From assembly GCA_019828565.1 (NCBI GenBank), contig JAHDYR010000061.1, positions 1 through 46,357 on the forward strand: 46,357 nt of DNA, given 5' to 3'. This document shows, one piece after another, positions 178 through 28,943 of this stretch; within the stretch, counting starts at the first letter, position 1, and every line of letters starts with the position of its first letter. The notes under the pieces were generated by a model. It saw only the letters and a program-made list of their open reading frames with translations. It was not told the DNA's origin and ran no database searches. A program made the position numbers and the translations under genes. The DNA is from Carpediemonas membranifera BICM. Taxonomy: Eukaryota; Protista; Fornicata.

Positions 178-719
178 CTCGCCAGCCCGACCGACTTGAG
201 AGCCTGCGAGAAGGTGCTAGGCATCACAGCGGACATCGCAGATGGTGCCCCGGTGAATAGCAACCAGTCAGAGAGTTCCGGGGAATCTGGAGCTCGCTCA
301 CATCAATATCGCGGGCTGATGTGGCAGTCATGCCCGTGTGGCTGATGATAAGAGCCAGCGCATTGTAGGGGAAGACTAGTCGGACAATAGCTTCCGATGC
401 GACAGGCTCAAACTGCCCAAGCGGCTTGACATTGTCTCTGCCGGAGTTTCGGAATGAGTTGACGGCACTGAGAGTGACAGCAGCGGTTGCCTTGTTCAAT
501 GATGCAGCAAAACCGGGCACAAGCGATCTAACCTCCTCGGATCGGATCACGGAGAGCGCTTCATCCTCGGTACTCCCTCGCTCACGTTGTAAGAATTGAA
601 CGAACCGCGAAAGGTTGTTTTGCGACCGCTTTCCGGGAAGATTTCTTCTTAATCTTGTTCAACCAAGCTTCTTTCATAGCTTCCATGGTTGTTTCCATCT
701 CCTGCGGGCTTCCTTCCAT
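178..719 (-). pseudogene. Tyrosine-recombinase-fold protein, frameshifted and lacking catalytic motifs
   Basis: Joining frames gives MKEAWLNKIKKKSSRKAV/NLSRFVQFL...FAASLNKATAAVTLSAVNSF (core-binding-like), LALIISHTGMTATSARDIDVSEL (box A-like, T in place of catalytic R) and WLLFTGAPSAMS...FSQALKSVGL, then the microsatellite. Same layout as ORF 35330-35992. Confidence 0.5.
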
Positions 720-720
720 C

Positions 721-1052
721 GATATACGGATTTCAGACTTTCGTCATGCACAAAAATTCGAATCTCTCCAAATGCCCAAAACAGTGGTCAAACCGTGTTC
801 AGGGGTACAATAGAGTGCCATAGGCACGTTCTTGCATTTCAAAAATATTCTAGAGGTCGTTCATAAATTCTCAGATGGCCAACAGTACGAAAGTCTGAAA
901 TCCATTTATCATGAGACCCGACAAATTTGAAATCCATTTATCGGGTGGATACATCACTGTAGAGGGTATTCATGGATATAGGTGCCTTTTTCGGTGCCGA
1001 GGGGAGTCAACATTTGAGGTCGTGCAGGCAGAAAGTCTGAAATCCGTATATC
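721..1052. repeat. 22-bp perfect inverted repeat pair with internal partial copies
   Basis: gatatacggatttcagactttc (721-742) is the reverse complement of gaaagtctgaaatccgtatatc (1031-1052). Related copies at about 890-910 and 927-943. Confidence 0.85.
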
Positions 1053-1838
1053 TCATCACTGCTAATAGATCCTGGCAGACAACGGCCTCTTGGCAACGCC
1101 TGAGGTGTAAGGATTCGCTTGCCTCTGTGTTGTCGCATCAGCTTCGCTGAAAACGGGGGAACTTGACCCGCGCATTCGCGCACTTTATGCTCGCAACGAG
1201 ATTGAAATGGCGAACTTAAGAATAGAAAGAATACTGGCGGCTTTAACGTAGTAGGCATGTACACAACACTAAGAAACATCAGTTGGCGGGCGCAGAGCAT
1301 CACTAAAGCAACAATAATCCCTAAACAACATCAATCATCATAAGTCCATCAGGACCATACGATATGAACAATAAATGAACCACAGAGCAGTATAGATGAT
1401 TTGAGAGTACCAGGCATGGCCAGAATACCGCAATTATCGTCCGTTGATCCACGTGACCTCCATCTGGTCGGTATCCAGAGAACGCCCGTCAGACGCTTGC
1501 AACGGAACATTTAGGGGTGCATCCTGAATGGGGGCCAGATTTGAGGGACCCTTGGTCTGACATGCCATGACCGAGTACTCTAGGGGCCTCCACAGTGCGT
1601 CCCGAGGTACGTTATAGCACCACAGACTTGGTGTGTCTTAGCCTGCACCGCCCGAAAGCTCGCCGGATCACTCCCCATACGTTATATCGCCATTCAGTCC
1701 ACATAATGGGTGTTTTTCGGAGCGATTATATCCCCCGTTTGTATGGTATAACGTTTCCGACACCCTGTTGCCTACGGTTACTGGCAATTTTTCTCATCTC
1801 TGTTATATGTCCATTATTGGGATATAACGAAGAGAAGA

Positions 1839-3598
1839 ATGACGTTCGAATTCCTTCACGAGTGGATCGAGAGCACCTCAGATGATGTGATTGAGGCCGT
1901 TATCACCGAATTCAAGGAGAAGAAGACAAACAAGGCGAAGAGTGCCGTTCTTCGGGACAAATTGCTCGACGAGAACGATATCTTCGATATAGTCGTCAAG
2001 AACGGTACGTAATTGGTGCAAATGTTTATATAGGGATCAACTTCAACCACCTGTGCTCATATTTCGAGATTCAGGGCGAGAAGAAGGCAGAACTCGAGGC
2101 ATTGCTGTCTCAGCAGGTGCAGGATAAGACCTCGAACGAGATCATCGAGGCAACCTTCACGGAGAAGGAGATGAAGGCGTTTGAGTCGGCCGCTGTCACA
2201 GCCTTCAAGAACTCCAAGAGGGCTGAGTATGCCAAGGAGAATGAGGGCGCGCGTATCGAAAAAGAGGCGCTGAGTGTCAAGGTTCGGGCGTGGCGCAACG
2301 CGACATCCACCAACGCGCTTGTGCGCGACCATGTCACAGCAATGGTTGCCAGGGTGCGCAGCAAGGAGGCAGACCTTGCTTACATGAAGCACTCCTGCCG
2401 CTCGTACTTCGAAGAGTACATCATCGCCCTGGAATGGTTGGAGACCCCCGCGGGAGAAGGTACGCCCCTGCTCCCCCAGTTACTGGCGCTATCATCGATT
2501 ACTATCACAAAATTGTTCGAGGATACAAGAAGAGAGTCAAGCAGTTGAGGAAGAGCTTGACGGCAAAGAGTGAGGAAGTCATCACGCTGCATCGACGCCT
2601 TCTGCAGCAGCAGGCTGAGCGAGAGGCAGCCTATGACGCTGACAAGTCCATGGATGCATCACTCCCATGCAGCCCCATCCCGCCACAGTCTGGCACAGTC
2701 TCCAGGACTTCCTGTCCCCGACGCGATACGGACGAGGCGCAGGCAGCCATGTCTGTGAAGCGCAAGGCCCTCATCATCACGCCCGAGAAGGCCAGGCCAG
2801 AGGACTCGGAGGAGGAGTCAGAGGAGGAGGAGATAGAGGAGGAGGTGACTGTTGAGGAAGAAGGGTGAGTCAGATGAGGAGGACGTGACCAAATGCGACG
2901 CCTGTATCCAGACTGAGCCCGAGAAGGCCAGACCTGTGACCTGCGAGACTGGAACTGAGATGAACGAAGGTGACGACCGTACCCCGACAGATGACAAGGA
3001 TGTCCAGACCGAGGAGAGAGAGGACTGCCTGGACGAGTTCACACGTCACCTCCGGTCGAAGTTCAAGCCGTACAACCCCCCAGGCGATGGTGACTGTGTT
3101 GGCCACTGCCTCAGGCATGTGTCTAACGAGCGTGACGTACCGACAACAGATTGGCGTAAGCAGCTTCAAGCTGCTGCAGGGATTATGCAGAAGCGCGACC
3201 TACTTCCGGCAGACTATCAGCTCTTTTACAGCCATGCCAGTTCAACAGGCAAGGGTGGCAAGAACGACAGTCTTCCATACTGCCGGGACACCGCAATTCA
3301 GGTCTGGTCACAGATTCACAACATGCCCATTGCATCCATCCAGGACGGCACAATCGTCTTCTTCCAGGGTAGAGACAAGGGTTACATCACCCTGACAAAC
3401 ACTAATGCGAGCATGTCCGTCATCCGTGTCATTGCAAACGTAATTGGCGTCAATGACTACATTTATATCTCCGGCACGCCAACTGACGTCACAGCACACG
3501 CGGAAGTGTACCATGCAACACCTGTTGAGCTGAGGAAGGCAGAATCGCACCTGTCTGCCCAACAGAACACAGAGGATGACTGTTATTTTGTGGAATGA
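1839..3598 (+). CDS. Coiled-coil/acidic N-terminus plus OTU-like cysteine protease; one intron, two apparent frameshifts
   Basis: ATG at 1839; removing intron 2005-2033 joins in frame to ORF 2102. Frameshifts at a C-run near 2472 (5 C versus 6 C in the 14400 copy) and a G-run near 2863. OTU-like PGDGDCVGHCL...WRKQL...AIQVWS...YHAT. Confidence 0.75.
2005..2033 (+). other. 29-nt spliceosomal intron
   Basis: gtacgt...tatag; removal fuses ...VVKN|GINFNHL... into one open frame. Confidence 0.75.
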
Positions 3599-4210
3599 GT
3601 CAGTAGTAAATGAATGAATTGCGGTGGCGTCGTGGTGCTGCCGTGGTGCTGTTGGCTTTGGGGCGCTGACTGGACAGCTGGTGGCAGTATTGATGTTGTT
3701 TATGCAATTAAAGTTCCTATCGTTTCTTCTAGCTCGTTCCTTGTGTGGTTTCGTGGTTCCTTTGACTCGTTTGATGTTGTTGTTGAGTATCATGGGCCAT
3801 AGCGGCCGTCAGACGCTATTGATGTGTTATTATGCAAGCTTATATCCTCAATAAAGCTCTATAGCTCATTGGCACTGAGAAAATAGTGGGAAGTCGGTTC
3901 CCACTATTGGTGCACTTTATGGCTCGCAACGAGATTGAATGACGAACTCCGTCATCCGTGTCATTGCAAAAAGGTGATTAGCGTCAGTGACTACATTTAT
4001 CTCCAACTCATCTACAAATGCAAATATCGAGTGTCTCCACCCCATCATCTCTGCAATCTCTGCAAAGACTGCCATGAGAACTACTCTGCAATTGCGGGAA
4101 TCAAACTGAGTAAAACTGACTTGTGCTTGTGTTTTGGCGTGTCTTCGGTTGGGCTGTTGACTGACAGTGTTTATCGGCTGCTACAGGTTTCTCTCTATTT
4201 ACAGATCTAT

Positions 4211-4442
4211 TCACATCGAAAACTCGTTGTAATTTGCTATGTAGTATGAACAAAATGTCTTGATCCTTGCCGTGCAGCGCTTCATCTGCTCTAATTCACC
4301 ATCAATGCGAGAATCAATGAAGTGCGCTCGTTGAATCCCATAAACAACGTCTAGCTCCAATTCTATCCCTTCAATCGTTAATGCTATACGTTTCGCCGGC
4401 GATACCGGCGTCGCTCGTGTGTTTTTCTTCATCGGGCGTCAT
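4211..4442 (-). CDS. Small end-proximal ORF (copy of 16361-16591, one indel near the start)
   Basis: Identical peptide ...IQRAHFIDSRIDGEL... Confidence 0.5.
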
Positions 4443-5600
4443 CTGAAATGCGCAGTTTATGCGGAGCCTGGTTGGCTGTATAAAAGAGGTCCAGATGTGT
4501 ATCTATCCCTGTATTGACTATCGTGCGTGGAAGAGCGGCGAGCTTCTGGAATCAACGGGGCGAATCTGCCCTGTGTATTCCGGCAGCGCACGGCCCTGCC
4601 ACACGTCCTAACTCGTCATTAAGGTCGTTAGTGACCCTACAAACACTCATACGCGCATCATCCTACCTTTCATTAACGAGATTGACTCTCGCACCGCCCC
4701 AAATGGCCGTATGAACCAGGCGCTTGCCGGTCGCAACCTTTCGTCATCAATAGAACTCTATGCTCGCCACTTCACTGTTCCAGCAGGGTTATGTTGCCAA
4801 TCGGGACGTTTCAGATGTCTGAGCGAGCGATACTGAGTAAAAGCCGACTTGATATTGATTAGTTGTGGGAAAAGAGGCTTATGGCATCTAGAATGAGCGA
4901 AAGCATGCTCAGATGGGCAAATATCTCGAATGCTGTCTTGCTATGAGCTCTATCACAGTCATTTCTGGATATCTCCGACATTGCTTCCGTCATTACCATT
5001 TTTTTTCATGCAGGCGGCGTGACCTTAAACTGAACAATAACAATAACTCCCCCAATTGGAAGAGTTCACACCTGAAACCATTATGCCTGAGGTTTCAGCC
5101 AAGGGCGAGTACATTGCCGTCTTTTTTAATTCCAATAACTTTAACTTTTTTCTTCGCGTTGACCGCCCAAGAATGTTCTCCTTACACGACGGTCTGGGCA
5201 TCATCGTGTAGTAATACTTGTGTTTACTCGGCCTCTTGGTTTTTAGTTGCAGCGTAGAAAAATTCCCTGAGCTGTGCGCTCATCAATAACGCCTCTCGAC
5301 TCGGCCCGAGTCTTTTGCTAAAAATCTCGAGATCTGTTCTGTCCCCTTCGCAGATTTTTGTTGGATCACAAGCACTACTGGTGTAGATCAGATCCTGCAA
5401 AAAACTGCGAAGGGGACAGAGCCAAAGTGGTCGAACTTGAAAAAAATGGCTCTCGTCGTCAAGAAGAAGTCACCCATACTCAGGTCACAGCTTAGCCCAC
5501 AGTTAGCCATCAATGCAGTGAATAGAGAACTAGTACTGCTACCCAGCCATACCATTCTTATTTACTGACAGAGCCTGGTTCCTCTGATTAATTCAAACGT

Positions 5601-5676
5601 CTTGACTTAAAGTCAAGTTTTGGCCTTGACTTTAAGTCACAAAAACTTGACTTGAAGTCAAGGAATTGACAGTATG
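5601..5676 (-). repeat. Transposon terminus, subfamily 1 (TGACTTnAAGTCA palindromes)
   Basis: Ends ...ttgacagtatg at 5676, where identity to the 15127 copy stops abruptly; three palindromes. Confidence 0.85.
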
Positions 5677-7673: not shown

Positions 7674-7747
7674 CATACTGTCAACATCCCTAGATTATCT
7701 TTGCTAAACCCTAGATTATCTTCGACCTCAAAACGCTAGATAATCTA
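7674..7747 (+). repeat. Left terminus, subfamily 2 (TAGATWATCT palindromes)
   Basis: catactgtcaa, then motifs at 7691, 7712 and 7737. Confidence 0.85.
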
Positions 7748-7930
7748 CAATTTCTTGCTCAGAAATGAAGTATTCATTAAATTTAAGCTATTTAGAGATA
7801 AACGAAGGTCTTCTTTAGAGTCCATATGATGTACGTAGAGCATGGAAAGAAGCTCTGGCTCTGACTCCTTGCCTGGTTTGAGCATTTCGCCGTGCAGGTT
7901 AAGACGAAACGATAAAATGGACAATAACAG

Positions 7931-8034
7931 AAAATCTAACAGGTAGATTCACTACGATAGTGATTATGTGAGTAGTTGAAAGGAGGTACATATGCGCATA
8001 ATCACTTTCAGAGTGAATCTACCTGTTAGATTTT
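7931..8034. other. Long hairpin (23-bp perfect outer stem plus 10-bp inner stem)
   Basis: 7931-7953 pairs with 8012-8034; 7959-7968 pairs with 7997-8006. Confidence 0.9.
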
Positions 8035-8415
8035 GAGATATGGTCGATTTCTTGTTTTTTGACTTGGCTAGAGTCGAATTGAAGAAAAGGAGAGGCTATT
8101 ACTCAGGGAATATTGCTCGTCAAAGAAAAAGCAAGCAAGGCCGCGAGGTATGGCCACCCGACCTACAAGATGGGCTGGGTGTCATCGCGTAAGGACGACC
8201 GGTCGTGCGCGGTCAACGCTGACAAAACTTAGCGATTTAGAGAAATAAATGGCGCCACCGTATTCAGCACAAGACAGTGAACTCAGCTATATGGTTTTTT
8301 CTCAGTATATTTACCCAGCGGCTGATCCCACAGTTTAAGGACGGGTATTAGCCTGCACTTTGCATGAAAAAATTCTGCCTGAACACGACCAATTGTCCAA
8401 AACACAGCATTTAGC

Positions 8416-8622
8416 ATGCAACAGGAGCTGGAAGCAGCTGCAACATCTATTCTAGACCATTCCACAACGATTACGCAGGAAATTGACGCAATAGAGGCCA
8501 TTCAGTCCCATTACTTCATAGATTCACGCTTGAACGATATTACGAGCAGTATCAGGCAAGAAACAAGAAAGCTGAACGCGATTGGTGACTCCTTTCTCGC
8601 TGCGACATTTGCAGCATACTGA
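8416..8622 (+). CDS. Small end-proximal helical protein of unknown function
   Basis: EIDAIEAIQSHYFIDSRL aligns with ELDVVYGIQRAHFIDSRI of 16361-16591, at the same position in the element. Confidence 0.55.
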   Translation: MQQELEAAATSILDHSTTITQEIDAIEAIQSHYFIDSRLNDITSSIRQETRKLNAIGDSFLAATFAAY

Positions 8623-8891
8623 CAGCCACGACACGCCATTAAGCTTACGTCAGGGAGCGCCATCGCCAAGCAAGTAAATTGAGCTGTATACGACCACCAG
8701 AGACGGACGTATGAGTCAGAACGGTGTGCTACCGGAATACGCAGGGTGTTTTGTGCCCTGTTGATTCCAGGAGCACGCTGTCCTGGGTCACACAGGATTA
8801 TCACATAATCACTGAGCAATCGGGCTCATGGTACATTGTTTCATTGGATCTATCTTCATGAAAATATGTTTGAAAAGATTCAATTGTATCT

Positions 8892-10108
8892 TTACTGCTC
8901 CGACTGTTGAACCACCGACTTGAAGTTCTCAAGGCAATCGTCACAAAGACGGATCTTGGGAATATTCACGCCGTCAATGACGACCTTCACGGCAGTGGTG
9001 CCCATACAGCCCTTGTTACCACAGAACCAGTGCCCACACATCCGACAATGATATACCGAGGCGTTCTTCTGGCATGCGAAACAAGTCTTCTCCTGGACAC
9101 AAGCCTGGCATGTGAACTTCCACGAGGCCTTCTTTCTGTTGGCTTCTTTCGTCCAGTTGGCAGTCTTTAGAACATTTCTCCGGACGAGCAGGCACGCAAA
9201 CGGAATTGTCATGAAAGTTCCTGCCGCACTCTCCACACGAGACAAACTTTGACGTGTTGAGATTGCCAACCCAGTCCAAGCTGTGGCAATGGCCGCAACA
9301 GAAGGCAAGCATCCTCTTCTGCAAGTCAAGGAGGTTCTCTCCATCATCGTCAGAGTCTGAATCTGCGGTTACCGGCCGTTCTTTGAGCTGAGAGAGATCT
9401 TCCGACATGCGCTGTGTCATGCGATGGACGTCATCGAGTAGCATGACGTCACGCTTAGAGATAGACTCAGAGGGTCGAACGGGGTCAACCTTCACCTCCT
9501 GCTTCACTTGCGGCACGGAATGGGGGATTTCTGCTGTCTTGAAAAACGTCTTCGTCCGACCAGTAAATATGTCGGGTGCCGAAAGGTCCACCAGATTAAG
9601 GGACAGAGGACGCGAATCAAAATTCTGGGGGACGTCCAGGCCAACTCTCGTGAAAATCTTCTTCATCGCGGTCAGAAGCTCCGATCGCACCGGGTTGGGG
9701 GCCCGAGAGAGGTTATGAAACACTCTCGAAGGAGCCTGATCAGAAATGCCGATGTTGCAGTGGCAAGACTGGGTTGCCCACTCCTTAACATGCCCAATGA
9801 CAAGCCTACCCTGCGATACAGCCGTGAGGGACTTGATACCATCAAAGAATGTCGGATCAGGGTGGCAGGGCTGCAAGTACACCGAGATGATGTGATTGTA
9901 GGCATTCGCCACCTTACGGACAGATAGACCAGTCATATCCGTTCCAAACACATCAACGGTGATGCAAAAAGAATGCCTTGAGCATACCAATCATGAGAGC
10001 CGACCTGCATTCGCTCTTTGCGGCGTCATTCCACCTGACCATCGGCTTGCGTTTCTGAGAGTTCGTCTCTCGGGTGTCCGGAGTAGTTCCTTCATTTCCA
10101 CGCTTCAT
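8892..10108 (-). CDS. PHD-like plus FYVE-like zinc-finger protein (two apparent frameshifts)
   Basis: The ATG 10108 frame (CRSALMIGMLKAFF) matches the paralog (CRAIFAAAMLDTFF) and shifts at a T-run near 9967. CGHC...CGECGRNFH...C, then a shift to CQAC, CFAC...YHCRMCGHWFC...C...RLCDDC. Confidence 0.75.
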
Positions 10109-10203
10109 CTCTAGTTCCGTGGCTGGCATTAGATGATCTTCTCGAAGTCACGCATTTTTAGGATTTTTAGAATCTTTAGAATTCTTGAAAGAGCGACTGA
10201 CAG

Positions 10204-12759
10204 ATGGCGCTTCAACTGAAGTGGAAACTGTCTAACGGATCTATCTATGCTCCGGAGGGCACTGATGACATCAATACCATCCTTTGCAGCGTCTGGCTCT
10301 CGATTGACGCAGTGGATCGCCGTATTAACGGATTTGATACCTCCAAACACCAGCAAAGGCTCGAGCTAGCCCGCATCGCGCAGGAACTAATCAATATCGG
10401 CGCTGTATCGCGTGAGGCTATTTCTAGCAATCTCTACCCAGCGCCATCATCCACTAGCATCTCAAAGGAGAAGAAGGCACACCGCTCTGGTCCCAGTCAC
10501 CTTTACGTTGGTGCATATGTTCTGCATTCTGATAGCGTCGGCCTCGAGGCAGAGAATGCTCGTCTACGAAAGCGTATTGCTGACACTGAACGTCTTCTGC
10601 AGGTGTCCAACGAGCTCAGGGCCATCACGATCGGCGTGAATGCAGTCAATGACGAGATTCACATCATGCAAGCCCTTGCACAGAGACTCAACCTTGACAT
10701 TATCAACATCAAACAGGTCACAAACCAAGTCAAGTCGCTTCAGTGCAGCATTCGGAACATCGCAGACGTTGAAACCATTGTCAAGTCGCATAGGAACTTG
10801 AAAAAGGCCCTAAAGGGCTACATACCCATGGCGATCACTCAAGAGACACGAGCAAAGAGGACGGACAAGGATCACCGCGAGTATGACCTCGACCTGATTA
10901 CCCACGTCGACGCAGACCTCGAACAAGTCAACGCTACATTCGACGGCGACGACTATAACACTGAAGTGCTCAGAGGTACGACGGTGTGCATCTTCTACGA
11001 ATCGGCAATGAAGCGAAGTGCACATTATGACGTGATGAAGAGAGCCGGTCTCAACCCGCGTCTCCAGTCTAGCGGCAGGTATTCCCATGTGCAACACGCT
11101 GAGTTTGACCTCATGCGGTACTATCGCCAGGCGGTGGCTTCGCCTATCGATCTCGAGACGTCAAGGGCTGCTCGTAAGAACGTGGGCAAGCAGTTGACAG
11201 CGCAGACTCAAGCTGAAGAGACTCAGACAGTGCCGCTTGATCTTCTCGTCTGGGTCGATGGATGGCGAGGGTTGACTACATCTGTGAAGGTTCGGTTTGT
11301 CGATATCTCCGGCAAAGTCTTCCCGTCAGGCGGAACACCACCCTTCCGCATACTCGAGTACAACGGACCAGAGAAGCGCATTGGAGAATTCTTCGACTTC
11401 ATCGAGCGCTCAGTCGAGAGTACCCATCGCGAGGCACTTGAGGTGAGAAATACCGGTCTCCTGTGCCGTGTCACCCGCGTTATGTTCATCGCAGACCACC
11501 CAGCGATGTCAAAAGTCTGTGGAACCTTGATTGGCGGCAGCTATCCCTCTCCATTCAGCTCGGTACATGCTGACAACAAGGCCTGGAGCCCATTCGGTCT
11601 CACCCCACGAAACACGATTGCAGACGTGATGTATGCGAAGAAGATGTCTGTTGAGGACAAGACAGTCCTGGATAGAGAGAAGAAGTGGGGGTCGTTCTAC
11701 AACAAGAAGAATAAGTGCATCATGCCCAGCCTATTTGAGAACTCGGATGACCCAACTCTCGATAGGGGCAAAATCTTCCTTGTCCCGCCGATCATGCACC
11801 TCAGTCATGACTTCGTCTCCTTGATACACAACATTTGTCGGATGTTCAAGCCAATTGAGGTCGACCCAGACTCTACCCCGGAGGAAATCAAGACCAAGAA
11901 GGCCAGAAACGCTGACCTCGCCAGGCTGGCTAAGTTTGAACCTCCCAGTCGCACGACTGGCTGTAATGAGCAAGTGAAGGGGAGGAAGATGATCGCGTCA
12001 ATTGGAAACAGTCTCTACATGGCATTCCCTCCCCCCGTTCAGCCACTTTTCAGACTCGTTGCCTACCTGCAAGAGCATTATTACTCTCACGAGGAGGCCA
12101 CGGATGACATTATCACCTGGCATCGACTGACAGCGTTGCTTGTTCACCTCTTTTCACTGACAATGTGTCTGAACACGACCAGCACCGTGTCGGAGTCTAT
12201 TCCAATCCGGCCGCCGTCTAAGGTAGCCAAGAAGGCTCCCTCCATCGACACACTTCATGGCTTAGCGCGAGTTGCTGTGTTGCCGGAGATTCAGTCAAAA
12301 ATCCGAGTCCCACTTGGCCGGATCATTGAGGAGTCATTCGAGCGCGACTTTATTGGCAATCAGGACAGTAGAGTACACTTAAGGCGCAACCAGATGGTCC
12401 TTGAGAGAACGATATTGAAGGAGCAGGTCGAGTTGTTTTACCGATTCCTCCGTGGCGTCGTCTCGTATGGGCGACAGTCAACAGACGTTCCCCACCAAAT
12501 ACGTCTGAAGACAATGCGCGTCCATCGCTGCTGCAAGGACGCCAAACACTGGATCCGTATTCGGAGCGAGGGCACTGGAACATTGGACGAGGGAGACTGT
12601 CAGAAACTGTTACCTCTGTTTGAAGGTCAAGTGGATGGTCTATGGAAGAAGGTGTTGAGGCAGGTAGGGCTCGTGTTTGACGGGCAATGGTTAGACATCG
12701 ATGTCCATGAGGAAGGAGAGATCTCACTGGATGTGTGCATCTGCGGCAAGTATGAGTAA
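10204..12759 (+). CDS. Putative DDE transposase (CACTA/Chapaev/Transib-RAG1-like), subfamily 2
   Basis: 851 aa. VWVDGW (D352), IADHPAMSKVCG...GGSYP (D431), PPIMH (H532) and IEESFER (E713) mirror the D, DxPA, MH and FER motifs of that group and are conserved in paralog 17897-20476. Lies near a TIR-like end. Confidence 0.7.
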   Translation: MALQLKWKLSNGSIYAPEGTDDINTILCSVWLSIDAVDRRINGFDTSKHQQRLELARIAQELINIGAVSREAISSNLYPAPSSTSISKEKKAHRSGPSHLYVGAYVLHSDSVGLEAENARLRKRIADTERLLQVSNELRAITIGVNAVNDEIHIMQALAQRLNLDIINIKQVTNQVKSLQCSIRNIADVETIVKSHRNLKKALKGYIPMAITQETRAKRTDKDHREYDLDLITHVDADLEQVNATFDGDDYNTEVLRGTTVCIFYESAMKRSAHYDVMKRAGLNPRLQSSGRYSHVQHAEFDLMRYYRQAVASPIDLETSRAARKNVGKQLTAQTQAEETQTVPLDLLVWVDGWRGLTTSVKVRFVDISGKVFPSGGTPPFRILEYNGPEKRIGEFFDFIERSVESTHREALEVRNTGLLCRVTRVMFIADHPAMSKVCGTLIGGSYPSPFSSVHADNKAWSPFGLTPRNTIADVMYAKKMSVEDKTVLDREKKWGSFYNKKNKCIMPSLFENSDDPTLDRGKIFLVPPIMHLSHDFVSLIHNICRMFKPIEVDPDSTPEEIKTKKARNADLARLAKFEPPSRTTGCNEQVKGRKMIASIGNSLYMAFPPPVQPLFRLVAYLQEHYYSHEEATDDIITWHRLTALLVHLFSLTMCLNTTSTVSESIPIRPPSKVAKKAPSIDTLHGLARVAVLPEIQSKIRVPLGRIIEESFERDFIGNQDSRVHLRRNQMVLERTILKEQVELFYRFLRGVVSYGRQSTDVPHQIRLKTMRVHRCCKDAKHWIRIRSEGTGTLDEGDCQKLLPLFEGQVDGLWKKVLRQVGLVFDGQWLDIDVHEEGEISLDVCICGKYE

Positions 12760-13164
12760 AGAACGAAAACATGATTGGTAGTTATAGATCACGAGAATAG
12801 GCATTCTCATCCGCATTGCGGAGAAAAGGAGTTGATGTTGTATTAAGAAAAGGACGAATGCATTATCAGCCATTTGAATGCATGGCTCCGAACTACACGC
12901 GTCTCGGCGTTGATATTGGTTATTAAATGCACTGCTGGTAACATATTGAGGGATTTCGTCACTGTACTCGAATGCACAAGTGTGCAGTTTATGCTTTCTC
13001 GGCCAGCCGACGATATTTACCACCACAGACAGCTGCATACAGGCTGTAGACTAGACATATACAGCAGGCTGAGTAATATAGCACCATACCCACCTACAAA
13101 CCGCGAATCAACCTCAAGGTCACATAAACATAAGCGATACGGTCGGTATATCAATCCTTTACTC

Positions 13165-14709
13165 TTACTTCTTCACTGACCATCTCCTCCTCTTCAGCCC
13201 GGGAGGAACCTTGCGCAGAGTGGCGTGTCCCCTTGTCACTTCGACCGCATACTCGATTTCCCACTCGCGACACTGTTGGGCAAAACACGCCAGGGCGCTC
13301 TGGCCGTTTTCGTTGGGCTTAAACGCGACATGTGTCACTTTGCCCTCCTCAGACTTGCTAAAAACGTACATGCCGACGACTGGATCGATCTTTGGGTCAA
13401 AATCCCGGACAACATGGAGGTATGCAACGGACTTTCCAGTCATTGAGCACCAGGCTTCAACAGCCCACTGAGTCAACCACTTCTCCTGTATGATTGGCTT
13501 ACCGATGTTGCCCTCCTCCGTGACAGTGTGTACACTGCACACTTCATGGAAAAGTTCGTCCCGGAGACCCTCCTCGGGTCGCCTGTACCCCGGAGTGGCC
13601 CGCCGGTTCATCTCTATCGCTTCCTTGTATATCTGCTCGCGGTAGTTGTCCGCCTTCGTCTCCGCTGCACACTGCTCTTCATTCGTCATCGTCTCCCAGC
13701 TCTTGAACGCATGAGGCTCCGTGACGCCCTCGATCATCATGAGGCAGTGTGTTATACAGTTGCCGTGGGGCAGGGTTTTGTATCTGACCCACTGCTTGCT
13801 CTTCTCCAGCTGATTGGCGACGTCAACTCTAAACTTGACTTCCCTGCTCCTCATCTGCTCGGAAGCTGGGTCGACGTGGTCGACCTGGACATATTCAACG
13901 TCCGACTCAGCCTCGAATGCCACCTCGTTGTCTGCCTCTTGCTCCTTATCTGCCTCACGCTTCTCCTCTGACTCTGCATTCACCTCTGACTCAGCCATCT
14001 CGTTCTCCTGCTCCTCCTCCTCTGCCTCACCCTCCTCCACTGGCTCCTCTTCCTCCTCTGACTCCTCCTCCGAGTCCTCTGGCCTGGCCTTCTCGGGCGT
14101 GATGATGAGGGCCTTGCGCTTCACAGACATGGCTGCCTGCGCCTCGTCCGTATCGCGTCGGGGACAGGAAGTCCTGGAGACTGTGCCAGACTGTGGCGGG
14201 ATGGGGCTGCATGGGAGTGATGCATCCATGGACTTGTCAGCGTCATAGGCTGCCTCTCGCTCAGCCTGCTGCTGCAGAAGGCGTCGATGCAGCGTGATGA
14301 CTTCCTCACTCTTTGCCGTCAAGCTCTTCCTCAACTGCTTGACTCTCTTCTTGTATCCTCGAACAATTTTGTGATAGTAATCGATGATAGCGCCAGTACC
14401 TGGGGGGAGCAGGGGCGTACCTTCTCCCGCGGGGGTCTCCAACCATTCCAGGGCGATGATGTACTCTTCGAAGTACGAGCGGCAGGAGTGCTTCATGTAA
14501 GCAAGGTCTGCCTCCTTGCTGCGCACCCTGGCAACCATTGCTGTGACATGGTCGCGCACAAGCGCGTTGGTGGATGTCGCGTTGCGCCACGCCCGAACCT
14601 TGACACTCAGCGCCTCTTTTTCGATACGCGCGCCCTCATTCTCCTTGGCATACTCAGCCCTCTTGGAGTTCTTGAAGGCTGTGACAGCGGCCGACTCAAA
14701 CGCCTTCAT
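13165..14709 (-). CDS. Coiled-coil/acidic N-terminus plus OTU-like protease, 5'-truncated relative to 1839-3598
   Basis: About 14052-14754 is nearly identical to 2126-2828. C-terminus TLPHGNCITHCL...YREQI...WAVEAWC...RGHAT is OTU-like but divergent. Confidence 0.75.
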   Translation of the reverse strand: MKAFESAAVTAFKNSKRAEYAKENEGARIEKEALSVKVRAWRNATSTNALVRDHVTAMVARVRSKEADLAYMKHSCRSYFEEYIIALEWLETPAGEGTPLLPPGTGAIIDYYHKIVRGYKKRVKQLRKSLTAKSEEVITLHRRLLQQQAEREAAYDADKSMDASLPCSPIPPQSGTVSRTSCPRRDTDEAQAAMSVKRKALIITPEKARPEDSEEESEEEEEPVEEGEAEEEEQENEMAESEVNAESEEKREADKEQEADNEVAFEAESDVEYVQVDHVDPASEQMRSREVKFRVDVANQLEKSKQWVRYKTLPHGNCITHCLMMIEGVTEPHAFKSWETMTNEEQCAAETKADNYREQIYKEAIEMNRRATPGYRRPEEGLRDELFHEVCSVHTVTEEGNIGKPIIQEKWLTQWAVEAWCSMTGKSVAYLHVVRDFDPKIDPVVGMYVFSKSEEGKVTHVAFKPNENGQSALACFAQQCREWEIEYAVEVTRGHATLRKVPPGLKRRRWSVKK

Positions 14710-15126
14710 CTCCTTCTCCGTGAAGGTTGCCTCGATGTTCTCGTTCGAGGTCTTGACTCAGGTATTCTGGCCATGCCTGGTACTCTCAAATCATCTATAC
14801 TGCTCTGTGGTTCATTTATAGTTCATATCGTATGGTCCTGATGGACTTATAGTTGTTGATGTTGTTTAGGGATTATTGTTGCTTTAATGATGCTCTGCGC
14901 CCGCTTACTGATGTTTCTTAGTGTTGTACACATGCCTACTACGTTAAAGCCGCCAGTATTCTTTCTATTCTTAAGTTCCTCATTTCAGTCTCGTTGCGAG
15001 CATAAAGTGCGAAATAGTGGCCAATTGGCCACTACGATATCGGCAATTAAGACAGTAACAGGAGCGTTTGGTGCGCAGATCAAGACTTTTTAACAATATC
15101 AACAAACGGTTCACTCACTTTCTCGT

Positions 15127-15202
15127 CATACTGTCAATTCCTTGACTTCAAGTCAAGTTTTTGTGACTTAAAGTCAAGGCCAAAACTTGACTTTAAGTCA
15201 AG
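15127..15202 (+). repeat. Left terminus, subfamily 1 (nested insertion)
   Basis: catactgtcaa, with palindromes centred at 15149, 15170 and 15194. Interrupts ...ctttctcgt^ttaacg, which is intact at 29113. Confidence 0.85.
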
Positions 15203-16360: not shown

Positions 16361-16591
16361 ATGACGCCCGATGAAGAAAACACACGAGCGACGCCGGTAT
16401 CGCCGGCGAAACGTATAGCATTAACGATTGAAGGGATAGAATTGGAGCTAGACGTTGTTTATGGGATTCAACGAGCGCACTTCATTGATTCTCGCATTGA
16501 TGGTGAATTGGAGCAGATGAAGCGCTGCACGGCAAGGATCAAGACATTTTGTTCATACTACATAGCAAATTACAACGAGTTTTCGATGTGA
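16361..16591 (+). CDS. Small end-proximal protein of unknown function
   Basis: Paralog of 8416-8622 (IQxxxFIDSR). Confidence 0.55.
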   Translation: MTPDEENTRATPVSPAKRIALTIEGIELELDVVYGIQRAHFIDSRIDGELEQMKRCTARIKTFCSYYIANYNEFSM

Positions 16592-17855
16592 ATAGATCAG
16601 TAAATAGAGAGAAAACCTGTAGCAGCCGATAAACACTGTCAGTCAACAGCCCAACCGAAGACACGCCAAAACACAAGCACAAGTCAGTTTTACTCAGTTT
16701 GATTCCCGCAATTGCAGAGTAGTTCTCATGGCAGTCTTTGCAGAGCTTATATGTCACTCTTCGGGCGTCGACAACTCCGGTGATCGTTTCGCTCTCTAAA
16801 CATCCCTTCAGACCGCAGTACCAGTGGCCACAGATCCGGCAGTGATAAGCTTTGGCGGCCAGGTTCATCTTGCCACACTCTGCGCACTCATCCCGAGCAC
16901 ACTCTGGGCAGACCTTCTTCTTCCAGGACTTGGAACACTTTGAATGGAACCAACGCTTGCATGAGTCACAGAATGGATGCATGCTGCTGCCAACGTTGGT
17001 CACCCAGTCTAGACAGTGGCACTTGCCGCAGCCGTAGCTGAGGCGACGGAGCTCCAGCTGCACAAGCTGCACGTTTTCTTCGGCGGGCTGGGCAGACCGA
17101 CCCTCTGCCTCTTCAACAACATCTTCATCGCTGGAATCATACTTCGACCGCTTCATGTCAAACTTCTCATTCAGCTGGAGAAGATCTCTGTGGACCAGCT
17201 GAAGTCTATCATCGAGGTCGTCACGTTCTCTGCGGGGAACTGGATCGGGTTTCACGTTGCCAAGGATGCTGTCTGGTGCTTCGCTCTTCACATCGGCACA
17301 TGCCGGAGGTGGAGTGCGAACGGCAACCATGGTTCTGACTGTCTTCTTGCTGCCTCGATACGGAACCATGTTTCTCACATCCTCACAAGGCAGACCACGC
17401 GGAACCTGAATCGATCTGCTTTCGATATCCTTCAAACCAACAAGATCCAGAATCTCTCGAACGGCATCCGTCATGATGGAGGTGTTGCTGTGCCTTTTCA
17501 GCGCGGTAACCTGATGGAAGATGCGACTGGTGTTGTAGGCGATGGTGTAGCCGATCCTCACACCCCACTTCCGCACGTGACACTGGGCAAATCTTCCAGT
17601 CGTCATGTTCTTGTTCTTCTCATCTTTGGAGACGATAAGAAGCTTCTCAAACATGACTGAGATCGGGACAAGGATATGCTTCACTTGGTTGTTGAAGGAG
17701 TTCACGATTGCTTCGGCGGATAGGCCAGATTGCTCATCATCAACGTCGTTTGAGATGACGAAGAACGTATCAAGCATTGCAGCAGCAAAAATGGCACGGC
17801 ATACGGTGATCTTTCTGTCAGAAAGAGACTTTATAGCCTTACTGTCTTCTACCAT
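16539..17855 (-). CDS. PHD finger plus FYVE-like finger protein
   Basis: CGKC...CDSCKRWFHSKC...CPEC (C4HC3), then CAEC...YHCRICGHWYC...C...KLCKDC. The true stop may be earlier, since the paralog ends soon after the last Cys pair. Confidence 0.8.
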   Translation of the reverse strand: MVEDSKAIKSLSDRKITVCRAIFAAAMLDTFFVISNDVDDEQSGLSAEAIVNSFNNQVKHILVPISVMFEKLLIVSKDEKNKNMTTGRFAQCHVRKWGVRIGYTIAYNTSRIFHQVTALKRHSNTSIMTDAVREILDLVGLKDIESRSIQVPRGLPCEDVRNMVPYRGSKKTVRTMVAVRTPPPACADVKSEAPDSILGNVKPDPVPRRERDDLDDRLQLVHRDLLQLNEKFDMKRSKYDSSDEDVVEEAEGRSAQPAEENVQLVQLELRRLSYGCGKCHCLDWVTNVGSSMHPFCDSCKRWFHSKCSKSWKKKVCPECARDECAECGKMNLAAKAYHCRICGHWYCGLKGCLESETITGVVDARRVTYKLCKDCHENYSAIAGIKLSKTDLCLCFGVSSVGLLTDSVYRLLQVFSLFTDLFTSKTRCNLLCSMNKMS

Positions 17856-17896: not shown

Positions 17897-20476
17897 GTGA
17901 GTATGTCACAAATGAGGGCTACGCTTCGCTGGGAGCTTCAAGATGCTCTTATCTTTGCTCCAAGAGACGAGGAGAACGTGAATATTATTCTTGCTAATGT
18001 GTACCGCTCTCTTGATCCCGAGTTTGGACGTCGCGCTGTTGGAAGCGCCGAAGGAACGGGCTCCAAGGAACTGGCACGCCATACGTTCTCTCACATCGTT
18101 CATGAGCTCGTCAATTCTGCTATCATTGATCGAGAAGAGGTTGATCAGGCGTTCTTGGCTATCAACCCACGTAAGTTCGCTGGAGTCGTGAGGAGCTATA
18201 CCCAACAACGCTTTTGGACAGAGGCTTACGTCTCACGCCACCGTGAGATAGCACGCCTTCAGGATCGCATTGCGGTCCTCGAGCGGACAGTTGCTAACAC
18301 TGAACGAGTCATGTGCTTAGTGAACGCCCTTCGGTCGGTCTCAGAGGGTGTCAATTCTGTCTCTGACAGCGTTGTCATATTTAACAACATCGCGTCCAAG
18401 CTTGGCTGTGGGGAGGAGGTGATTCGACAGTCGAACAACCAGTTGAGGTTGATGAGCGTCGATGGTGACATCAGGAGACTAAGCGGCATCGAAGCCATTC
18501 TTTCCGAAAAACAGTTCGACTTCCTCGCCCCACTAGTGCCGACAACACTCGAAACAGGTCACAATACGTTCAGGTACAAGGATGACAAGGCGTACCCCCT
18601 AGAGCAGACGCTGCGCTTCCGTGCATCAGAGGATGACATCCCCCTTGTCAGAGACTCGGCCAGATCCATTGGTATTGACGCCGACGTTTCGGTGGAGGGT
18701 GCTTTCATGACGGTTTTCTACAACTCGGTGACTGCTCGCGATGCACACATCCCGCACCTGAAAACTCTCGGTTTCACGCTGAAGAAGCTCACGAGCGCCA
18801 CATGGCAGTATGTCCAAGAGGCACATTTTGATCTTCGTGCCCACTTCGAGAAACTTGTCGCATATCCACAGGCCGCTTGTCTGACCGTCAAGGAGCGTGA
18901 TGCAGTCAGTGCCGCTCTGAACCAACAGCGGTCACACGTTGACCCAGACGAACAGCCCCGGACCATTCCTCTCGTCCTCATTGTTTGGTTCGATGCCTGG
19001 AAGAGCCAGACGACAGCCCTGAAGTGCCGCTTCTACGATCCCAGTGGCTTCGTGTTTCCCTCGATTCTGACGCCCCCTTTTCGCGTGTTAGAATACCAAG
19101 GTAAGGAAAGTGACATCCGGTCACATTTCTCTGTTGTCGATCAGATCATTGACATGGCTTGCAAGGCTGTGCCAAAGGTACGAGACACACGTCACTACTG
19201 CTCGATCGAGAAGCTCATACTGATCGCTGACCACCCTGCTATGGCGAAGATGATCGGAACCACATGCGGCGGTGACTATCCCTCCCCATTCCAGCCAATC
19301 CACGCGGCAAACAAGGGGTGGAGTCCATTCGGCGTTAGATATCGTTTGTCGCTGTACGATGTTGTGAAGGCAAAGCAGATGGTCAGTGACGCAGAGCCTG
19401 GGGTCGACCTGACTCTTGAGTGGGGATCTTTCAAGGCCAAGAAGGAGAAAGTGATTCGCCCCACGATGCTCGCATCAACAGAGATACCGCTCTCGGAAGT
19501 ATATATATCCCCGCCAATCATGCACATCAGTCACGATCTGATCGAGCAGTTCGGAAATATCTTTAAGATGTTCCCCAGCTACACCGTTGAAGGGCGCGGA
19601 GAGGAGAGAGTGGCGATAGTCCGGAGAAACAAGATGCTACAGCGCGCAAAGAATTTTGAGGCGCCCGACCGCACTACTGGGTGCAACGAGCAAGTTAAGG
19701 GCAGGAAACTCATGGCCAACCTGGCTAAGGAGCTGTATACAGCGTTCCCCCACCGCGTCCAATCTGTCATGCGTTTGGCTGGGTATCTACAGGCACACTA
19801 CTACGCCATGGATCCAGTTACGGACGAGGTCGCCATCTGGCATCGTTACGCAGCTTTAGTCATCCACATATTTCACCTCACGTTGTGCTTGAAGGTGTCT
19901 GCTATCGACAGGGAGGACTACAGGTTCCCTATCCTCCGGCGCGCGCATGTGGGTGACAATGCACCCTGCATCCAAACAATACAAGCCAACGACCGCCTGG
20001 TTGCCTTGCCGGAACTTCAAGCTTCTCTCCGGATTCCTTTTGGTCGAGTCATTGAGGAGTATTTCGAGCGAGAGTTCATCTCTAACCAGGAATCCCGTGT
20101 TCATCTCCGCCGGAACAAGGTGTTGGGTCGCTTGATTTTGCTGGATCAGGTCAATCAGATCTACCGGTTTATGAGGGGCGTTGTCTCCCACGGTCGCAAG
20201 AATGGTAATGTACCCATTCTCTCCAAACTCAAGACTATGAGAGTCCACAAGTGTTGCAAGGATGTGAAGAAATGGCTGTCGATTCCGAGGGACCTGATTG
20301 TGACGACTATGTCTGATGCTGACTATTCTCGCTTGAAGCCGATATTCACAGTCGAGCTAGAGGGACTCTGGAAGGAGGTGAACAGGAGAGCCGGGCTGAC
20401 ATTTGATGACCAGTTCCTCGTGCTGCCAGTTCACGATGATGGGGTGGAGACACTCGATATTTGCATTTGTAGATGA
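17897..20476 (+). CDS. Putative DDE transposase, subfamily 1
   Basis: 859 aa. VWFDAW, IADHPAMAKMIG...GGDYP, PPIMH, RTTGCNEQVKGRK, IEEYFER, C-terminal HKCC...CIC; colinear with 10204-12759. Confidence 0.7.
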   Translation: MSMSQMRATLRWELQDALIFAPRDEENVNIILANVYRSLDPEFGRRAVGSAEGTGSKELARHTFSHIVHELVNSAIIDREEVDQAFLAINPRKFAGVVRSYTQQRFWTEAYVSRHREIARLQDRIAVLERTVANTERVMCLVNALRSVSEGVNSVSDSVVIFNNIASKLGCGEEVIRQSNNQLRLMSVDGDIRRLSGIEAILSEKQFDFLAPLVPTTLETGHNTFRYKDDKAYPLEQTLRFRASEDDIPLVRDSARSIGIDADVSVEGAFMTVFYNSVTARDAHIPHLKTLGFTLKKLTSATWQYVQEAHFDLRAHFEKLVAYPQAACLTVKERDAVSAALNQQRSHVDPDEQPRTIPLVLIVWFDAWKSQTTALKCRFYDPSGFVFPSILTPPFRVLEYQGKESDIRSHFSVVDQIIDMACKAVPKVRDTRHYCSIEKLILIADHPAMAKMIGTTCGGDYPSPFQPIHAANKGWSPFGVRYRLSLYDVVKAKQMVSDAEPGVDLTLEWGSFKAKKEKVIRPTMLASTEIPLSEVYISPPIMHISHDLIEQFGNIFKMFPSYTVEGRGEERVAIVRRNKMLQRAKNFEAPDRTTGCNEQVKGRKLMANLAKELYTAFPHRVQSVMRLAGYLQAHYYAMDPVTDEVAIWHRYAALVIHIFHLTLCLKVSAIDREDYRFPILRRAHVGDNAPCIQTIQANDRLVALPELQASLRIPFGRVIEEYFEREFISNQESRVHLRRNKVLGRLILLDQVNQIYRFMRGVVSHGRKNGNVPILSKLKTMRVHKCCKDVKKWLSIPRDLIVTTMSDADYSRLKPIFTVELEGLWKEVNRRAGLTFDDQFLVLPVHDDGVETLDICICR

Positions 20477-26101: not shown

Positions 26102-26985
26102 TTCGATCGAGATTAAAAATCACCCGAATTCTAGCTCTGTTCTGGCCGCTGCAGGCACCGCTGGGCGCGATAGAGCTCGGAGCGGCGTTGTCTGCCAAGA
26201 ATACCTATTTGCTCCCGGTGAAAATTGAACCCACGATCAGGAGGCTGTGTACAAAGTCTCTTCCCTCTATGCCATGACTTATGGGAAATCCGCCCTTATT
26301 AATCTCCCTACAGGGAATATAGGCCATTTTGGAGGTATGAGCGACCGGGAGGGGGAGATTGGGGGACATTTATGGTATGGCTGGACTCTACTCGGGCAGA
26401 CTATTATAACGAGGCTCAGATCAGACCTCTACGGCCGCTATACGAGGAGAAACGAGCCAGTAAGGGCACTAGCGGCCCATGGCCGCAGCAGCGCCCAGCC
26501 AAGCTCAGCTATAGAGTCACCTGAGGCCCCGAATGACGTGCTGATCAGGTCGACTCCCATCTATTGACTTGGTAATTGCAGAGGCCGTCTGAACGCGATG
26601 TCCTAATAACCGACTTGGTCGGAGCGGTTCGGCGATGACTCCGCTGTATTCCGCGCCTTCTTCTGATGCCGAAACATGCAGTCCTTTAGAGTCAACGCGC
26701 GTCCTGTCCGTCAGGCATGAAGGGCATTCAGCAGAGGCATTGCTGCGGTCTGCAGGCCGCCCCAGCGCTTCAGGATGGCCAACTGGATGATCTGGACCCA
26801 TGTCTATCAAATCCATTTTGATCACATCAATGTGTCAAATCTGACGATTCGACGATGAAGCGTCAGGGACGTTTTCAGGGCGGCAGAAGCGGCTTGTAGA
26901 CCTGTCATAGACCATAGAGCGATGACGCAGCATGTTTGTATTTTTTTGTCCGGTTGTTATATCTCCGTATCAATCAAATCTTTTA

Positions 26986-27928
26986 CTACTCCATCTGCGA
27001 GTGAAGCCAGGTCACTGCAGTTCTCGTCAGATACACCTTACGTGTCTTGCGCGGCTTCTTTGTTCCTTTTGTGACTGCCTCGGCAGTGGCCTGCGCCACC
27101 AACTCACGACAGGTAGACTTCGGCGTCTCGGTGCCACCCCGCGTGCATGCCCAATGTGTGTGAGCCACAGATTCCCCACACACAATGCATGATCCCGTCA
27201 AAACAGCCGGCGGCTTCTGCGGAGTCTTCAATATCTGTCGAAGCAGGTCGCACATTGCGGTATCGACTGTCTGCCGAGACAGTACAGGGCGTGCGTGAAT
27301 AGTCTGTGTAGACGCCTCCTCAAGGTCGCGCACCTCTGTCTGCGTCTGATGATCCGAGCCGACTGGCACCTTTGTCTGTGTCTGACCATCCGAGCTGACT
27401 GTCTTCTCCTGAGTGACTTGGCGGGATGTGACTAGCTTATAAAGATAGGGACGCGGCGGCATCGTGCGTACAGGCGCACGACCATACGTATACGATTCCT
27501 CGGGACGCTGGCGCGGTGCGTCTGTCCTCGTCGGCTGAACCCGCACCCTGGGCGCCCCCCCCGTTCACCTCACGTCGAATATCGTCCACAAAGTCAGTGA
27601 ACGCCTTATCCGGTCCCGTCCTCGTGGTCACACGCCTCGTGACTCCTTCGACCGCAGACAGGAAGTCCATGAATGACTCACCACCAAAAGAGGCAGAACC
27701 GTGGCATGCCTCGTTCCTGAAACGCTGGAGAGTCGTAATGTACCGTTGATTGATGCGATCAAGGTCCTTTCTGCAACTCAGAACGGCACATAGAAGCACA
27801 GAAGGATCGTCTGAATTATTGATCTTACCACTTGCTGCTATGATCTCCTTCAGCACAGGAACCATTCGCAACAACGTTTCCAGCATCATGCCAGCGTATG
27901 CAGCCGAATCCTTGTTGCCTGTGCTCAT
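26986..27928 (-). CDS. HEPN-domain protein, duplicate of 34359-35300 with a homopolymer frameshift
   Basis: Near-identical DNA; 8-C run at about 27555 versus 7-G run at about 34725. Confidence 0.7.
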
Positions 27929-28395
27929 ATCGAATTCTTTAGAACGAAATTCTAAAGAAATGTTCGCGGGTATGCCTGATCATCGCGCGTCGAAAGACAG
28001 CAGGAACGTACCCTACAGCTCAGGTTGAAGTAGGCTTGGCTTTGGTTCAACTGATAAATGCGCCATTGCTCCGTTTATATCATCCAATGTTAGGATGCCT
28101 TGCCATGATGATATGCCGGTCACTACGCTTCTGGGCGACGGTGGAGGCTGCTGCATGATCCAATATGTTGTTATGATTAACACCGTCCTGAAGGGTAATG
28201 CTGGGGGAATGGTGTTCCCGAGCACGTGATAGTGGACGGCCTTGTTGGTGAAGAGGGCGCGGCCCATGAGAAGAGGAAGAACTCATCGTCGCTCTCGACA
28301 TCGGCCTTGTTAACGAGCATAGTGCCGGCAGGGGCGTGGTCGTGAGAGCCCCGCCGCGGCGGAGTCATGAAAGCTTTACGTAATTGTTTAACGAT

Positions 28396-28943
28396 TTACA
28401 GTTCAGCCAATGTTCTCGGAGTACCTGTGAAGTAGTTTTTGGTGGCACGCTTGTGAGCACGCGCAGGACCTGCCGTTTCTTCCACCTCTCTTGCAAAACG
28501 TTTCAGCTCCTCTGTGGCCGGACACGTTGTAGGGTTATGGTAGCCTATCCACTTCACGCGACAAGTTGAGCCGTTCTGCCCATCCGGCAATGTGACCTTC
28601 TCGATGGCATAGTCTAGTTGCGTGTCAGTGAATTGAATCAGGTTGTCGCCCCTGTCTCCAAGCGAAGCATCCCTCTTCGCCAGCACAAAAAAGGCTAAAT
28701 CTAACTCTTCAATTGACGTGATGCCCAGCAGCAGACTCTCTACCCAAGAGGCATAGAGTGAGGGTGCCTTCTTCGCGACGTAGATCGCGTATCTATCGAA
28801 AATCGATAGACGCACCTTAGACGGAGCATTCATAGCATCTTTCAAAGAGTTGATACTCATACGAAGTGTCTGAAGTGCAGTGGAATGCCTTATGAGCATT
28901 GGCGCATGCTCGAGGATCTGCGTCGCCGCCTTGATCTGGTGCT
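28396..28943 (-). pseudogene. 5'-truncated duplicate of chromodomain-like gene 33058-33893
   Basis: Identity stops at 28943, where sequence matching 14958-15126 begins. Confidence 0.75.

Follow-up and report, generated by a model that had tools for sequence, protein, structure and literature searches.

What does it mean when transposon ends on a single contig begin alike and carry palindromes at the same distances, while the palindromes themselves differ in sequence? Contig JAHDYR010000061.1 of the Carpediemonas membranifera BICM assembly GCA_019828565.1 raises this question. The stretch analyzed here, hereafter the window, is this entire repeat-rich 46-kb contig (46,357 nucleotides; C62 of the 24-Mb assembly, whose other contigs are likewise given as C numbers). 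Reading its sequence directly, we found four transposon ends, at positions 7674 (+), 15127 (+), 5676 (−) and 37067 (−). With a probability of roughly 0.6, we regard them as terminal inverted-repeat cassettes of sister families that belong to one lineage of cut-and-paste transposons with a transposase of the RAG1/Transib fold; the terminal octamer would be the cleavage signal, and the block of sites behind it would serve as the address of the transposase.

Ends with a common terminus and family-specific palindromes

The nucleotides (nt) of an end are numbered here from 1, starting with its first C; the palindrome centers +22/+43/+68 (type A) and +22/+43/+67 (type B) of the original prediction had been counted from 0 and are hence identical to the nt 23/44/69 and 23/44/68 that we report. 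A common start, CATACTGTCAA, had been predicted for all four ends, and three of them, 7674 (+), 15127 (+) and 5676 (−), do open with it; the end at 37067 (−) opens with CATACTGTGAA, not with ...TCAA. Read further inward, the start of 7674 (+) is CATACTGTCAACATCC, that common to 15127 (+) and 5676 (−) is CATACTGTCAATTCC, and that of 37067 (−) is CATACTGTGAAAGTCGG.

The type A left end cassette (7674–7748, + strand) consists of an octamer (7674–7681) followed by three sites with the core TAGATWATCT (7691–7701, 7712–7722 and 7737–7747), whose centers lie at nt 23, 44 and 69 and whose palindromes extend over 9 bp at sites 1 and 2 and over 11 bp at site 3. In the type B left end cassette (15127–15202, + strand), the octamer (15127–15134) is followed by palindromes with the core TGACTTnAAGTCA (15141–15157, 15164–15176 and 15186–15202), which are centered at nt 23, 44 and 68 and reach 17 bp at sites 1 and 3. 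The same centers and core recur in a left-type B end (5601–5676, − strand) that belongs to an inverted copy without transposase; positions 183–5676 of the window match L002 at 98.6%. The fourth end (36993–37067, − strand), a right end, carries three TAGATAATCTA sites (37039–37051, 37018–37030 and 36994–37004) centered at nt 23, 44 and 69. It had been taken for a mirrored type A end, a view that we had to abandon: the core and the geometry are the same, but the spacers differ and nt 9 is a G, and the end belongs to a separate family, A2. The geometry (nt 23, 44, 68/69) is thus kept among types A, A2 and B, with 21 bp, or two helical turns, between sites 1 and 2 and 24–25 bp between sites 2 and 3. 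The motifs are confined to the ends. TAGATWATCT has 10 strand-wise matches in the window, corresponding to six sites, against 0.07 expected, and TGACTTNAAGTCA has 6 matches against 0.01 expected; every one of these matches falls within the four ends.

Across the genome, the two end types of the original prediction grow to at least five (A, A2, B, D and E). The 24-Mb assembly holds 85 occurrences of CATACTGTCAA, as compared with 7 of the reversed control, and nearly all of them are type A or type B ends; matches on C17 and on C13/C42 lack palindromes and were rejected as ends. The 27-mer terminus of type A is present in 45 exact copies, and a further 15 copies start with CATGCTGT (CATG, with a G at nt 4). 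The latter are the left ends of most of the transposase-bearing A elements of about 19 kb (C6:1054150, C7:420594, C57:20085 and 12 more), whose right ends start with CATACTGT; the same G-at-nt-4 variant is also the terminus of the metagenomic relative L053. A pattern search of the assembly yielded at least 37 ends of type A2, and type B is represented by 17 left ends. Types D and E together account for 99 ends, whereas the control gave 0. They start with CATACTGT[A/T]AGAATGGC, and their sites consist of an inverted pair of half-sites centered at nt 28.5 and of one half-site 11 bp further inward, the half-sites of D and E being one or two bases apart. The terminal octamer common to types A, A2, B, D and E is CATACTGT, and a CAT[A/G]CTG terminus is present in all ten lineages seen. 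The predicted modular design, a conserved signal followed by subfamily-specific sites, is therefore found as an invariant octamer with a lineage-specific block of repeated sites behind it.

The original prediction hinged on where the identity between copies of an end ceases. It stops at CATACTG: the outer flanks vary from copy to copy, and a 2-bp target duplication is present. Opposing ends of the same type were paired by hand from their coordinates, with a chance of 1/16 per pair that two bases match; at the C35 locus, where two partners were possible, the flank-matching one was taken. In 44 of 46 such pairs the element is bordered by a 2-bp duplication (14/14 for A, B and A2 together, 17/18 for D, 13/14 for E), and matches over three flanking bases fail. 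None of the 46 pairs is of mixed end type. Nested pairs behave as expected: C24:165525/192436 encloses C24:174163/183218, a type D pair (C6:1050991/1077030) encloses a type A element, and a type E pair (C38:92012/115483) encloses a type D element. Collectively, these observations identify the CATACTGTCAA-type ends as real transposon termini.

The duplications of type D are often homodinucleotides (AA, CC, GG or TT; 11 of 17 pairs), which may reflect a target preference. Several unusual arrangements of ends were also noticed. On C55 (47266–47377), two A2 ends placed back to back make up a 112-bp unit, and units of 742–752 bp on C13 (68039–68781) and C56 (71615–72367) each contain two left-type A2 ends; the flanks of the C13 unit are inverted copies of each other, so that it resembles an inverted duplication and not an insertion. 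On C67 (749166–793918), five type E ends with the same flanks and a spacing of about 11.2 kb form a tandem array of element plus flank.

End type, transposase clade and the inner edge of the cassette

Each end type was predicted to precede a transposase paralog of its own, and in the window this is the case for types A and B. The A end lies 2530 bp upstream of transposase A (10204–12759, + strand; 851 amino acids), and the B end lies 2770 bp upstream of transposase B (17897–20476, + strand; 859 amino acids); the two proteins are 39% identical. The co-variation of end type and transposase clade likewise extends to the genome as a whole. At 14 loci, the type A left arm (nt 1–2530, 98–100% identical) reaches the start codon of transposase A, with four arms starting CATA and ten starting CATG, and at all three loci of the B clade a B end is located 2767–2774 bp upstream of transposase B. 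Left-type A2 ends are found 1149–1151 bp past the stop codon of a clade of 879-amino-acid proteins (60% identical to transposase A) at eight loci, and five more truncated or rearranged copies have A2 ends within about 3 kb of an A2-clade transposase. The D and E elements each enclose a transposase clade of their own, these clades being 30–33% identical; the D clade is represented by L003, C6:701550, C35:119721 and C26:1082117, the E clade by C7:387411, C59:27026, C34:138245, C42:152442 and C16:498897.

Among the three B loci of the assembly, an intact transposase gene is present only in the window; L009 (C3:326194) is frame-broken and C6:1281291 is truncated. The entire B family may hence depend on one gene. 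Many copies have lost their transposase through internal deletion (14 of the 17 B left ends, for example, lack one), and these must be mobilized in trans.

A comparison of right arms shows where the family-specific part of an end stops. Types A and B agree at 8 of 8 positions over nt 1–8, at 26 of 69 (38%) over nt 9–77, and at 162 of 163 from nt 78 inward. Over the same nt 9–77, A and A2 right ends are 70% identical and A2 and B right ends about 38%, while further inward, starting at nt 78, all three arms agree at 99% of positions (162/163 and 161/163); the BLAST match between the A2 and B right arms runs on for about 1 kb. Since the arms are 99% identical and the A and B transposases only 39%, the arm must stem from a recent exchange between the families. 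The exchanged stretch reaches outward to the third palindrome, halting precisely at its inner edge, and, judged by its sequence, the end is a discrete cassette. Of the indirect evidence that mobility requires a matched cassette, the sharp boundary, taken with the lack of mixed-type pairs, is the strongest. In the comparison of A with A2, the octamer and the palindromes are kept and the first two spacers are changed, a pattern of conservation that would act as a footprint of the functional positions.

A transposase with the fold of RAG1 and its relatives

Neither transposase, nor most of the cargo open reading frames (ORFs), belongs to a Pfam family. A PDB sequence search, carried out with the single protein and with a profile of 20 sequences, returned nothing relevant, and no sequence homology to RAG1 or Transib was detected in this way. 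The fold was revealed by an AlphaFold2 model of transposase A built from 20 family members, with a predicted local distance difference test (pLDDT) score of 83.9 and a predicted template-modeling score of 0.75. Foldseek placed RAG1 first (E 5.8e-9), followed by the amphioxus RAG-like protein BbRAGL (1.3e-5), the Helicoverpa Transib transposase HzTransib (1.3e-3) and then the P element transposase. VIA-align superimposed residues 124–755 of the model on residues 459–1008 of mouse RAG1 (Z 14.2 over 446 residues); for the P element transposase, Z was 12.3 over 346 residues. The model thus identifies the protein as an aspartate-aspartate-glutamate (DDE) enzyme of the RAG1/Transib fold. D352, D431 and E709–713 (EExxE) are its candidate catalytic residues and are kept in nearly all family members that cover these columns; the sole exception at EExxE is P0004, whose profile match extends only up to position 563. 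None of the 20 family members has a CxxC motif, nor is H(3-4)H conserved among them; an H-x-S-H motif (HxSH) is conserved in place of this zinc motif. Transposases A and B are most diverged over residues 1–300 (21–29% identity), as compared with 40–65% over the catalytic part. In the model, residues 1 to about 110 sit where RAG1 has its nonamer-binding domain.

Relatives are few. A word-based protein search yielded two Carpediemonas paralogs only, and a profile search of 1.84 billion representative proteins gave just 18 relatives, whose sources include the NCBI assembly GCA_002919055.1 and the ENA metagenome ERZ23495434. The relative from GCA_002919055.1 (L051) resides in an element of 11.6 kb whose inverted repeats, 74 nt long, open with CATACTGCCC and carry AT-rich palindromes centered at nt 22.5, 50.5 and 71.5. 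This element sits in the pol gene of a Ty3/gypsy retrotransposon (677–2206 and 13748–15128), and its removal in silico, together with exactly 2 bp, restores an ORF of 939 amino acids; none of its five cargo ORFs has a Pfam match. Weaker evidence comes from single ends of three further relatives: the L053 end starts with CATGCTGTCA and has a palindrome centered at nt 23, a candidate end of L060 starts with CATACTGCCC followed by a 19-nt inverted repeat, and a candidate end of L057 consists of CATGCTGTGGAA and two GGCCTAGCCAT motifs. In sequence, the palindromes of the relatives are unrelated to those of Carpediemonas, whereas CAT[A/G]CTG is kept, as is the placement of a first palindrome near nt 23. 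The terminus and the position of the first site hence outlast a complete turnover of the site sequence.

With RAG1, Transib and ProtoRAG, the elements described here share the fold, a DDE triad in which a long insertion precedes the E, and element ends of the type 5'-CA...TG-3'. The end is likewise bipartite in these systems, with a heptamer-like cleavage signal and a second site at a fixed distance. The nonamer of the recombination signal sequence with a 12-bp spacer (12-RSS) occupies nt 20–28, close to the first palindrome of the Carpediemonas ends (nt 18–28, center 23), and the N-terminal domain is placed like the nonamer-binding domain of RAG1. There are also clear differences. Target site duplications of Transib elements measure 5 bp; here they measure 2 bp, as judged by 44 of 46 pairs and by the empty site reconstructed for L051. 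CATACTG agrees with the RAG heptamer CACAGTG at 5 of 7 positions and, with a T instead of a C as its third base, departs from the CACWRTG-type heptamer of Transib. The 12/23 asymmetry of the RSS is absent, because the sites of each family are placed alike at its left and right ends, and the inner sites are palindromes, three per end. The original prediction had seen a hint of RAG in the heptamer match; with RAG1 as the fold of the transposase model, this hint is firmer than a 5/7 match alone would make it. The duplication, however, is 2 instead of 5 bp, and the ends are symmetric, without a 12/23 rule.

5'-CA..TG-3' termini are a shared feature of the CACTA-Mirage-Chapaev-Transib (CMCT) clade, as are duplications of 2–5 bp, and the PlavakaB lineage has 2–3-bp duplications and CATCA termini; CxxC and H(3-4)H motifs are the signature of the clade (PMC12730594). 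CATACTG...CAGTATG termini, a 2-bp duplication and the kinship in fold to RAG1 fit this clade, whereas the region of the CxxC/H(3-4)H signature contains H-x-S-H instead. En/Spm (CACTA) elements follow the same logic of a short invariant terminus and family-specific subterminal repeats, some of which form inverted pairs suited to a dimer. Their motifs, however, are scattered over hundreds of base pairs, whereas the sites described here are packed into 75 bp within the inverted repeat, and the CACTA terminus and 3-bp duplication of En/Spm differ from what is found here. TnpA binds the subterminal repeats of En/Spm; no TnpA homolog was identified in the Carpediemonas elements. The ends of Mu (L1–L3, R1–R3) and Tn7 and the IR/DR ends of Sleeping Beauty likewise possess several transposase sites at set spacings behind a cleavage-proximal sequence, and binding and catalysis are separated along the end in the way that we propose here; these sites, however, are asymmetric and oriented instead of palindromic, and their transposases come from unrelated families.

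A bipartite end whose subterminal sites are specific to the family is thus well known from CACTA, Mu, Tn7, Sleeping Beauty and the RSS. New is a lineage that combines the RAG1 fold with a 2-bp duplication, lacks the zinc-motif signature and has almost no public relatives, and novelty also lies in the packing of three palindromes into one compact cassette and in how very sharply this private block is set off from the body that the families share. Searches of the literature turned up neither an account of elements with CATACTGT ends nor one of these assemblies. An invariant cleavage signal joined to a swappable address block bears on how transposon families avoid or allow cross-mobilization, and here it can be read from natural sequence. 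Five cassettes in one genome and more elsewhere offer a simple comparative system for the coupling of end recognition and cleavage in RAG-type enzymes, with concrete protein/DNA pairs at hand for tests of orthogonality. RAG1 being the V(D)J recombinase, the lineage also bears on the possible origin of the heptamer/nonamer logic.

What may read the palindromes, and the make-up of the window

We propose that the cassette of about 75 bp functions in two parts, the octamer and the family-specific repeated sites. CATACTGT (CAT[A/G]CTG family-wide), which adjoins the 2-bp duplication, would be the cleavage signal for the conserved catalytic core, and the repeated sites would be the putative binding sites by which each transposase knows its own ends. 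Their most likely reader would be the fast-evolving N-terminal third of the transposase, with a dimer reading each palindrome. The first site, at a fixed nt 18–28, would resemble in its place the nonamer of a 12-RSS. If the sites are read in this manner, the A and B pairs may be orthogonal, as was originally suggested.

Several observations weigh against this proposal. Modeled alone, the N-terminal domain reaches a pLDDT of only 47.5, an unreliable value at which no DNA-binding fold can be named. The site geometry of D and E is unlike the three palindromes of A, A2 and B. Ends with a 21-bp deletion that retain two of the three palindromes are found at several loci (L012:9020, C56:28748, C8:294217, C16:235513), so that the third site may be dispensable. 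Copies within a family are identical by descent, and the coupling of end type to transposase clade therefore has to be counted as about five independent lineages and not by copy number; it also leaves out further transposase clades for which no ends were recovered (C39:7316, 38% identical; C3:46199; C19:10520). Types A and A2 have the palindrome core in common despite a transposase identity of only 60%. Specificity between these two would therefore rest on the spacers or be absent, and A and A2 may cross-mobilize, i.e., they may not be orthogonal.

A more far-reaching version of the proposal holds that the design of V(D)J recombination signals, a heptamer plus a second site about 12 bp further inward, is an old property of RAG1-fold transposases, that a dimer of the protist N-terminal domain reads the palindrome at nt 23, and that families arise by co-replacement of the cassette of about 70 bp and of this domain, with free exchange of all other parts of the element. 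We advance it tentatively, as an idea with the odds against it; were it true, such co-replacement would have produced a natural set of orthogonal RAG-like transposase/end pairs.

The palindromes might alternatively be bound by an accessory protein encoded by the element, while the transposase reads the octamer only. A candidate is at hand in the PHD/FYVE-like gene (8892–9990, − strand; two overlapping ORFs) located between the A end and transposase A, and in its counterpart of 438 amino acids (16539–17855, − strand) between the B end and transposase B. The two neighbor proteins are 26% identical, and hence more diverged than the transposases, and contain Cys/His-rich modules with a weak FYVE match (E 7.6e-5, below the Pfam cut-off); a comparable division of labor has a precedent in CACTA elements. 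However, the A2 transposase is located 1.15 kb from its left-type end with no gene in between, and the L051 transposase starts 400 bp from the end, the accessory gene being judged in this comparison by its position beside the transposase. Moreover, histone tails or lipids, and not DNA, are the usual ligands of PHD and FYVE modules. We therefore consider an accessory reader unlikely and continue to favor the transposase itself.

Still less probable, in our view, is that the palindromes have no role in specificity, so that any CATACTGT end would be usable and the sites would be promoter or terminator elements of the terminal genes, hairpins or host-factor sites whose sequences differ by descent only. 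The octamer is indeed common to all types, variants with two sites exist, and in A, A2 and B alike an ATG is found about 13 bp inside the right cassette, so that the cassette could be a promoter region. Descent alone sits poorly, however, with arms that are 99% identical beside transposases that are 39% identical and with an exchange that ends exactly at the cassette edge, as it does with the lack of a single mixed-type pair. The distance between the first palindrome and the cleavage site, which is kept among the unrelated sequences of other organisms, also fits a protein that bridges the two better than it fits a promoter.

That the ends are mere boundaries of segmental duplications in a small repeat-rich contig, or assembly artefacts, is hardly credible: nested and inverted repeats, among them 2-kb arms that are 100% identical, do crowd the contig, and some ends share flanks through duplication (C1:552596 with C1:574104, C13:5999 with C13:18711), but unique flanks and 2-bp duplications characterize more than 250 ends, which are spread over many large contigs, and an independent assembly has the same design, with an interrupted ORF that can be restored in silico.

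The remainder of the window reflects a complex history. The ends at 7674 and 37067 were considered as the two ends of one element and were rejected, since their flanks do not match (GG versus TT in reverse complement) and their types differ (A versus A2). The failed duplication test and the mixed type indicate that the contig is a jumble of partial elements, and the BLAST map agrees. Between 39.4 and 46.3 kb, the tandemly repeated CATACTGTGTACAC was likewise dismissed as an end: the flank upstream of it is the same or one base off in all copies, and palindromes are lacking. The repeat consists of four tandem copies of a 1096-bp unit (41879–46341), with a diverged copy from about 39166. This unit derives from element-internal sequence (it matches L002 5863–6444), and each copy holds an internal CATACTGTGTACAC. 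Two arms of about 2 kb that are 100% identical (26966–28943 and 33346–35320) form an inverted repeat, which stems from a recent inverted duplication or else from a fault of the assembly; 40-bp tandem arrays (29193–29732 and 32355–32834) are positioned between its arms. On its left, the B end at 15127 is preceded by 170 bp that recur uninterrupted, with 100% identity, at 28944–29113. The B element hence entered another member of its own lineage, in whose cargo region it came to lie.

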